DNA from: Amphiscolops sp. MND2022
Lineage: Eukaryota
Direction: 5' to 3'
Assembly: GCA_964187785.1 (NCBI GenBank)
Contig: OZ076412.1
Coordinates: 31,372,001 to 31,436,000 of the forward strand
DNA length: 64,000 nt
Shown here in pieces: positions 21,421 through 22,937 of this stretch (positions are counted from its first letter, which is position 1; each line of letters begins with the position of its first letter). Made by a program: the position numbers and the translations under genes. Below the pieces are notes generated by a model, which was given only the letters and a program-made list of their open reading frames with translations, was not told the origin of the DNA and did no database searches.

Positions 21421-22701
21421 TTAAGCCTCTTCACCTTCCTCTTCCTCTTCGAATTCACCCTCTTCTTCGGCGGTGGCATCCTGGTACTGCTGGTACTCAG
21501 ACACCAAGTCGTTCATGTTGCTCTCGGCTTCAGTGAATTCCATCTCATCCATACCCTCGCCAGTGTACCAATGCAAGAAAGCCTTCCTTCTGAACATAGC
21601 AGTGAACTGTTCACTGATTCTCTTGAACAGTTCCTGAATGGCGGTGCTGTTACCCACGAAAGTCGCAGACATCTTCAGACCTCTTGGGGGGATGTCACAG
21701 ACGGCGATCTTGACGTTGTTGGGGATCCATTCAACGAAGTAGCTGCTGTTCTTGTTTTGCACATTCAACATCTGCTCGTCAACCTCCTTCATGGACATGC
21801 GGCCTCTGAAAATGGCGGCAACAGTCAGGTATCGGCCGTGACGGGGATCACAAGCTGCCATCATGTTCTTGGCATCGAACATCTGCTGGGTCAGCTCGGG
21901 CACAGTCAGGGCTCGGTATTGCTGGCTGCCTCTGGAGGTCAGGGGTGCGAATCCGGGCATGAAGAAATGCAGACGGGGGAAGGGCACCATGTTGACTGAC
22001 AGTTTTCGCAAGTCAGCGTTCAGTTGACCTGGGAATCGCAGGCAGGTGGTGATACCGCTCATGGTGGCTGACACCAAGTGGTTCAAGTCACCGTAGGTGG
22101 GTGTGGTCAGTTTCAGGGTTCGGAAACAGATGTCGTACAAGGCCTCGTTATCGATGCCAAAAGTCATGTCGGTGTTCTCAACCAGCTGATGCACTGACAG
22201 TGTGGCATTGTAGGGTTCCACGACGGTGTCAGACACCTTGGGAGATGGCACCACGGAGAAGGTGGTCATCATTCTGTCGGGGTATTCCTCTCGGATCTTG
22301 GAGATGAGAAGGGTTCCCATTCCGGATCCGGTACCACCACCCAAGGAGTGGGTCAGCTGGAATCCCTGGAGACAGTCACAGCTCTCAGCCTCCTTTCGGA
22401 CGACGTCCAAGACGGAGTCTACGAGCTCAGCGCCCTCGGTGTAGTGGCCCTTGGCCCAGTTGTTACCAGCTCCAGACTGTCCGAAAACAAAGTTGTCGGG
22501 TCTGAAGATCTGACCGAAGGGGCCGGATCGGACTGAGTCCATGGTTCCGGGCTCCAAGTCCACGAGCACGGCTCTGGGTACATACTTGCCACCAGTGGCT
22601 TCGTTGTAGTACACGTTGATGCGCTCCAGCTGGAGGTCGGAGTCTCCGTGGTAGGTTCCTGTGGGGTCTACGCCATGCTCGTCAGAGATGACCTCCCAGA
22701 A
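21421..22701 (-). CDS. TUBB: Beta-tubulin, exon 2 (codons 20-445 + stop)
   Basis: Starts [10 protein letters not shown] after a TAG acceptor; GGGTGSG tubulin signature; uninterrupted to acidic tail ...[15 protein letters not shown] (TAA 21421-23). Confidence 0.98.
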
Positions 22702-22880
22702 CTAAAATATAAAAAATCTTTCAGCCTTTGAAAAGTCAAGCGCAACATTTTGAAAATGTTCAAAGTTCAAAAAATTGAAAACTCGTGCTATTATGAAAAG
22801 CGAATCTCCAAAAATCCTCTTGGAAATGGAAAAAATTTCAGAACGTGGAAAGGGATTTGAAGAAACTACGAAAAACTTAC
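22702..22880 (-). other. TUBB: Beta-tubulin intron (179 nt, phase 0, after codon 19)
   Basis: GTAAGT donor at 22880 and ...ATTTTAG acceptor at 22702; splicing restores MREI...GAK|FWE. Confidence 0.95.
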
Positions 22881-22937
22881 TTTGGCTCCGATTTGGTTAC
22901 CGCACTGACCGGCTTGCAAGTGGACGATTTCTCTCAT
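22881..22937 (-). CDS. TUBB: Beta-tubulin, exon 1 (MREIVHLQAGQCGNQIGAK)
   Basis: Exact 57-nt canonical beta-tubulin N-terminus with MREI autoregulation motif; ATG in CCAAAATG context; not in the ORF track. Confidence 0.97.

Follow-up and report, generated by a model that had tools for sequence, protein, structure and literature searches.

Why would a beta-tubulin, one of the best conserved proteins of eukaryotes, change almost exclusively in the colchicine/benzimidazole pocket, a major target of anthelmintics, fungicides and anticancer agents? This question is raised by a gene on the minus strand of a 64,000-nucleotide stretch of the genome of Amphiscolops sp. MND2022 (GenBank assembly GCA_964187785.1, contig OZ076412.1, positions 31,372,001 to 31,436,000), hereafter called the window, to which all positions given below refer. 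The answer we favor, with a probability of about 0.6, is that the inner part of the pocket (zones 2 and 3) has been specifically and adaptively re-lined while the rest of the protein has remained frozen. By analogy with characterized tubulins, the product is probably a naturally drug-insensitive tubulin.

The gene is composed of two exons and one intron.

22937..22881, minus strand: exon 1, M1 to K19, encoding MREIVHLQAGQCGNQIGAK; tblastn of the spliced protein back onto the window agrees
22880..22702, minus strand: single intron of 179 nt, GTAAGT...TTTTAG (GT-AG), after codon 19
22701..21421, minus strand: exon 2, codons 20–445 and the TAA stop; Tubulin GTPase and Tubulin_C domains

The acceptor at 22701 is the sole one that yields the 445-amino-acid frame, and the product contains no internal stop. 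Pfam places PF00091 (182 bits, 1.5e-53) and PF03953 (150 bits, 4.2e-44) on it, both far over the cut-off, and the MREI N-terminus, the GGGTGSG loop and the acidic tail of canonical-class beta-tubulins are all read in the product. The closest solved chain is the sea-urchin beta-tubulin of entry 8snb (964 bits), in which residues 20–444 align with residues 20–444 of the product. Because the product aligns without gaps to solved 445-residue beta-tubulins, the standard residue numbering is valid. A single tubulin copy was found in the 64-kb window by tblastn of the spliced protein. The GC content at third codon positions (GC3) is 0.70 as opposed to approximately 37% GC in the region, and the effective number of codons (Nc) is 38, which together suggest high expression. 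On these sequence features, the locus is a functional, canonical-class animal beta-tubulin gene, and a probably highly expressed one.

The nearest proteins are vertebrate class IVb-like, molluscan and sea-urchin beta-tubulins of approximately 97% identity, from which the body of the product differs at V30, M163, T165, M198, F200, G201, I236, S254, I316, I351 and V368. The main departures from consensus are located as follows.

22272..22264, minus strand: M163 and T165 (codons 163–165, M-M-T; consensus I-M-N), on strand S5; ligands hydrogen-bond to N165, which crystal structures number N167 (PMC5844890, PMC13037586)
22167..22156, minus strand: M198-T-F200-G201 (consensus E-T-Y/F-C); the buried E198 carboxyl is lost
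22053..22051, minus strand: I236, ATC (consensus Val), the same change as in vertebrate TUBB1
21999..21997, minus strand: S254, TCA (consensus Ala, 160/162), in helix H8 and flanked by the contact residues L253 and N256
21708..21706, minus strand: I351, ATC (consensus Thr), a residue of the colchicine-site mouth that crystal structures number T353
21657..21655, minus strand: V368, GTG (consensus Ile, 127/140), a listed hydrophobic contact
22671..22669, minus strand: V30, a departure from consensus

Within the two longer segments, the single codons are M163 (22272–22270), T165 (ACC, 22266–22264), M198 (ATG, 22167–22165), F200 (TTT, 22161–22159) and G201 (GGC, 22158–22156). The original prediction had listed T165, M198, F200, G201, I236, S254 and I351 in an intact 445-residue gene, and each of these residues was read at the codon assigned to it. 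M163, V368 and V30 are present too and were missing from that list. Position 316 is occupied by Ile, and in some close relatives by Val or Met.

The rarity of these residues was assessed in a reference set of 162 beta-tubulins with at least 85% identity, in which some positions were readable in fewer sequences. M198 (0/162), G201 (0/162) and I351 (0/141) do not occur in the set. S254 (1/162) and I236 (4/162) are rare, and T165 (7/162), M163 (6/162), V368 (6/140) and V30 (7/119) are found in a few sequences each. F200 is common (45/162). The strong conservation of E198 that had been claimed is borne out by 159 of the 162 references, and the replacement of Glu by Met does require at least two base changes. 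As to whether the same residues might be common in related taxa, M198, G201 and I351 are absent from the references, and M198 does occur in metagenomic tubulins (see below). No protein more than 95% identical over residues 159–259 was found in a protein database that lists only 90%-cluster representatives. We therefore rejected the homology search as a measure of the uniqueness of the pocket, because only those representatives are visible and the window protein is masked as one of the 15,420 members of the P0060 cluster.

The departures are strongly concentrated in the pocket. A contact set of 28 residues was compiled from published contact lists (PMC5844890, PMC13037586), and 6 of the 12 departures from consensus fall inside it (hypergeometric p=3e-5). 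As a control, 58 references with no more than 15 departures had a mean of 0.93 and a maximum of 3 departures in the site, compared with 6 of 11 in the window protein. When ten pocket positions were masked, identity rose to 99.3% with the beta-tubulin of Ptychodera flava, 98.8% with that of a rotifer and 98.3% with that of a bivalve, and the terminal branch shrank from 0.0198 to 0.0025. Nearly all lineage-specific evolution of the protein has therefore occurred inside one drug pocket. The deep pocket is lined by N165, E198, Y200 and V236, which correspond to N167, E200, Y202 and V238 in crystal numbering (PMC5844890), and the contacts of the colchicine site include I368, T353 (residue 351) and residue 318 (residue 316) (PMC13037586). 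The placement of the variants at published benzimidazole/colchicine-pocket sites thus agrees with the contact lists for positions 165, 198, 200 and 236. Residues 201 and 254 directly adjoin contact residues, and by beta-strand geometry residues 163, 165 and 167 should all point to one side of strand S5.

The sequence is reproduced in an ENA assembly. Two contigs of ERZ25074608, ctg181718_92x_l and ctg179305_100x_l (named 92x and 100x), carry an identical 373-residue product from M73 to the end. One of them is 100% identical to window positions 11421–23673 and the other is 98–99.4% identical over 18 kb, so that from their sequences the two look like two haplotypes. Because two independent contigs encode the same protein, a read-level error, which had been named as a possible refutation, is unlikely. 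In an exact look-up, the open reading frame (ORF) starting at ATG (M73) was matched and the one starting at GTG was not. Two ENA tubulins on long contigs (P0176 and P0172) were considered as further beta-tubulins of the species and were discarded, because they belong to other assemblies. The coding sequences of the two haplotype-like contigs differ at six sites, all of them third-position and synonymous. The chance of six silent differences out of six is approximately 2e-4 if approximately three quarters of the sites are replacement sites, and the gene is therefore under purifying selection. The restriction of the changes to one pocket, in a gene under such selection, makes adaptive re-lining the most likely reading.

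The buried polar set E198/N165/(Y200)/C201 has become M198/T165/F200/G201, turning a polar cluster apolar, and the pocket wall around this core has I236, S254, I351, V368 and M163. In the proposed mechanism, loss of the E198 carboxyl and the N165 amide would deprive carbamate benzimidazoles and similar ligands of their hydrogen-bond anchors, bulk would be added at the wall and the mouth by I236 and I351, and G201 may free space behind strand S6 for new packing. Dimers containing this chain would bind benzimidazole-type and other deep-pocket ligands poorly and would polymerize normally. By analogy, poor binding of this ligand class is the most likely outcome, and classical colchicine-site ligands are probably affected as well. 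Published work gives these expectations a basis. E200 (residue 198) hydrogen-bonds deep-pocket ligands and is believed to carry a proton when nocodazole is bound, and together with N167 (residue 165) it is among the main energetic contributors to ligand binding (PMC5844890). The V236I change in TUBB1 confers 2-methoxyestradiol resistance and gives a smaller cavity (PMC10216767). In genome-edited Caenorhabditis elegans, E198A, E198V, E198L, E198I, E198K and E198T each confer resistance to albendazole and fenbendazole with no fitness cost. Position 165 is a resistance site in Aspergillus (A165V), in line with the earlier statement that it is implicated in fungi. Since all E198 replacements tested in C. 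elegans are resistant and TUBB1 with I236 resists 2-methoxyestradiol, it is reasonable to infer the predicted insensitivity to ligands of the benzimidazole type. Going from GAG to ATG one base at a time leads through either GTG (Val) or AAG (Lys), each of which is known as a viable resistance allele, and a path to M198 was therefore accessible.

Several points weigh against the re-lined pocket as an adaptation to ligands. Pocket membership was taken from published contact lists and not from distances in coordinates. F167 and F200, which are needed for high-affinity benzimidazole binding, are retained in their susceptible states. E198M appeared in no paper found in the resistance literature searched. 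Resistance alleles are recessive in C. elegans, so that the animal is not necessarily protected by a single insensitive gene and the chain must predominate in the cell. Finally, pocket mutations can also alter microtubule stability, which is an alternative target of selection. The loss of drug binding, the adaptive nature of the re-lining and the selective agent are what we infer from the observations above.

As to that agent, the most economical driver would be a natural colchicine-site ligand from the diet, a symbiont or the animal itself. In ERZ25074608, a long-read assembly with metagenome-assembler-like contig names, the species is a component at approximately 100x, which is compatible with a sample of a host plus its symbionts. 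In the strongest form of this idea, the main beta-tubulin of the animal would be insensitive to a natural colchicine-site toxin (its own, or that of a symbiont or food) through about nine coordinated substitutions and no other change. We offer this form tentatively and consider it rather unlikely. If true, it would be a counterpart of cardenolide-resistant Na,K-ATPase and tetrodotoxin-resistant sodium channels.

M198 is found elsewhere in nature. JGI metagenome contigs were scanned directly by DNA pattern. A 10-residue motif gave no matches in these contigs, and the looser pattern N-x-D-M-x-x-x-IDNEA gave 32 matches (L006–L037), of which 27 are genuine M198 beta-tubulins and five (L011, L013, L028, L029 and L033) were rejected as chance matches. 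The genuine examples form three groups: a large, intron-rich, fungus-like soil set with ENSDM[ST][IV]CIDNEAL, which is probably fungal; intronless, animal-like genes (L014, L015, L023 and L030); and several genes in the ciliate genetic code (L010, L017 and L021). L014 has tandem M198 copies (931–965 and 2871–2905), L020 has an example at 8651–8685, and in L030 the M198 gene (879–913) lies beside a canonical E198 copy. Neither G201 nor T165 occurs in any of the 27 genes, and S254 and I351 are likewise found in none of these metagenomic M198 paralogues. N165 is absent from all nine genes in which residue 165 is readable. I236 accompanies M198 in five of the nine readable genes, compared with 5 of 203 references, which hints at coupled packing of M198 and I236 among lineages that are not independent. 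Outside the pocket, the metagenomic paralogues are 66–91% identical to the window protein (84–87% for L014, L015, L023 and L030), and canonical animal tubulins are 98–99% identical to it outside the ten masked sites. M198 therefore arose independently here. Shared descent with the M198 clade was examined and rejected, since an unmasked tree pulled the window protein to that clade with weak support (approximately 0.7–0.8) and this placement disappeared once the pocket sites were masked, indicating convergence.

This recurrence bears on the serious rival to a ligand-driven change, namely that the pocket substitutions tune the dimer itself, through its curved-to-straight transition, the stability of the lattice or the temperature dependence of assembly. 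The repeated appearance of M198 in unrelated lineages, often with I236, suggests an alternative stable packing state. The pocket also sits between the N-terminal and intermediate domains, beside the alpha-beta interface. In fission yeast, the pocket mutation Y50S reduces benzimidazole binding, stabilizes microtubules and lowers catastrophes and rescues by approximately 30%, and T165 and F200 are also found together in an Antarctic toothfish beta-tubulin (P0002). A review points out that sequence changes can shift drug effects via polymer stability (PMC10216767). Against tuning of the dimer, the changes strike exactly the side chains that contact ligands, including the two main hydrogen-bond anchors. 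Changes linked to cold adaptation or stability elsewhere are, to our knowledge, not confined to this pocket, which also counts against such tuning. We regard this rival as improbable on balance, yet as the one that deserves the closest attention.

A specialized ciliary or axonemal isotype, in which the odd pocket is a by-product of specialization, fares less well. The predicted EGEFEEE tail is present (residues 433–439, 21462–21442, minus strand) and fits the axoneme motif EGEFXXX, defined as EGEF followed by three acidic residues at the C-terminus (PMC10820790), and the best solved match is the sea-urchin chain. However, the EGEF acidic tail is also found in Fasciola isotypes 1–3 and in the near-identical sea-urchin chain of 8snb, so that the motif is no evidence of specialization. 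The part of the original prediction that called the gene a "specialised, possibly ciliary" isotype had this motif as its sole basis and is not upheld. No second tubulin gene was seen in the 64 kb, and specialization leaves a change in the drug pocket alone unexplained. The gene could equally be the organism's major beta-tubulin rather than an isotype. On this evidence, a ciliary origin of the pocket is distinctly unlikely.

More improbable again is that a redundant paralogue drifted neutrally or under weakened constraint, or that a divergent copy converted the gene. Neutral drift of isotypes is an idea of Burland's, as quoted in the literature. It is difficult to reconcile with zero replacement against six synonymous haplotype differences, with 99.3% identity outside ten sites and strong codon bias, or with the intact reading frame, GTP motif and tail, and drift would have spread changes over the whole protein. 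An artefact of assembly, sequencing or contamination, for which the 200-N gap at 30106–30305 and the many repeats in the window might speak, is scarcely credible given that the 92x and 100x contigs encode an identical protein, that the flanks are collinear over 12–18 kb and that the intron, bounded normally by GT and AG, follows codon 19 as at the conserved site.

Returning to the re-lined drug pocket, one close known system is TUBB1, the vertebrate class VI, haematopoietic beta-tubulin. TUBB1 is also a natural isotype with a reshaped colchicine site, in which V236 is replaced by I236; colchicine does not fit into its modelled cavity, which is too small, and it shows an altered selectivity for benzimidazoles (PMC10216767). 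However, TUBB1 diverges over its full length more than any other vertebrate isotype and keeps E198, and the M198/T165/G201 set is not reported for it. The window protein resembles TUBB1 in part of how it would work but does not belong to the TUBB1 class, since it shares approximately 97% identity with canonical tubulins of invertebrates and of the class IVb-like type, and 99.3% outside the pocket. The second comparison is with nematode and fungal resistance alleles (F167Y, E198A/V/L/I/K/T and F200Y; Aspergillus A165V), with which the product shares changes at positions 165 and 198. Hydrophobic replacement of E198 is the commonest route to benzimidazole resistance. Of the resistance codons 167, 198 and 200, the product has a replacement at 198 (E198 to M), with F167 and F200 unchanged. 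Resistance alleles, unlike the present gene, are single, recent and drug-selected, whereas here eight or nine changes are fixed together, F167 and F200 have kept their susceptible states, and a history of drug exposure is lacking. Functionally, the product is closest to TUBB1 and the E198 resistance alleles, and it is a natural colchicine-site-divergent beta-tubulin.

Among invertebrate sequences, a beta-tubulin of the cestode Hymenolepis microstoma (P0082) is otherwise canonical (94% identity); it has M163 and S254 and departs from consensus at 165 (I), 198 (Q) and 200 (L). It differs from the window protein in having Q198, L200, C201 and V236, and 5 of its 21 departures are in the contact set. 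The metagenomic M198 paralogues share Met198 in a real beta-tubulin, frequent I236 and the absence of N165, but they are divergent, whereas the window protein is near-canonical outside its pocket. S198 was observed in a Daphnia galeata paralogue (P0035), and M163/T165 in the bdelloid rotifer Rotaria socialis (P0025). The pocket may thus vary more among invertebrates in nature than one would gather from work on resistance.

The intron lies at a conserved position, after codon 19, and this, the 97% identity to bilaterian tubulins and a BEL/Pao element in the window mark the organism as an animal. The gene has one intron, compared with three or four in the tubulin genes of Ptychodera, Mactra and two other ENA assemblies (L004, L005, L038 and L039), suggesting intron loss in this lineage or this copy. 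Identity of the coding sequence is approximately 80–82% alike to the Ptychodera, Mactra and two ENA tubulins. Because it is equally low to all the tubulin genes fetched, synonymous sites are saturated. A CCAAT box is located 81 nt upstream of the ATG, and no canonical poly(A) signal was found within 600 nt of the stop. Downstream of the stop (20650–21080, minus-strand reading) there is a short tandem array of caacaatttcaaacct units at approximately 21010–21075, followed by several copies of an element containing GGGTCCCCC(C)TT.

Beyond the tubulin gene, the window consists of repeats, and neither a transfer RNA nor an Rfam match was found in it. The features are as follows.

443..3419, plus strand: degraded long interspersed nuclear element (LINE) with an ORF1-like ORF, a piece of the endonuclease and several pieces of the reverse transcriptase
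13227..14899, minus strand: BEL/Pao-type gag region with DUF1759 and a CCHC zinc knuckle
29471..29773, minus strand: recurrence of the family of the N-terminal ORF that precedes the BEL/Pao gag
30106..30305: run of 200 N
32328..43000, plus strand: recent segmental duplication with a unit of approximately 7.26 kb, copies 94–99% identical, and an internal partial repeat of approximately 2.08 kb
58009..63863, plus strand: second tandem duplication with a unit of approximately 3.43 kb, copies 98–99% identical
58578..58862 and 62017..62301, minus strand: duplicated 94-residue ORFs within the second duplication

The LINE has an intact counterpart, 93% identical, on a different ERZ25074608 contig (L001:307–4378). 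The nearest named relatives of its reverse transcriptase are 34–37% identical (Tribolium and Paramuricea), and closer ones are on ENA contigs. All 48 database relatives of the BEL/Pao gag family are ENA proteins, and the family appears lineage-restricted. The segmental duplication contains ORFs of 179–182 and 121–150 amino acids with no Pfam match (MDFFQ.SSPSNSISFGSDKQGF... and ...RSRAILKQYFDEDTEAITFPLG...). The match of the haplotype contig L002 ends at window position 29934, leaving the gap unspanned.

The gene amounts to a natural experiment in which essentially only the pocket, at about nine positions, has changed in a selectively maintained protein. It shows that multi-residue solutions for the pocket are compatible with function, and it allows the joint role of E198, N165, V236 and T351 in ligand affinity to be tested. 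Met198, which is missing from the resistance literature searched, recurs in nature, and this bears on how variation at codon 198 is read in resistance surveys. If the selective agent was an ecological toxin, the gene would be a rare instance of an animal tubulin with target-site insensitivity.

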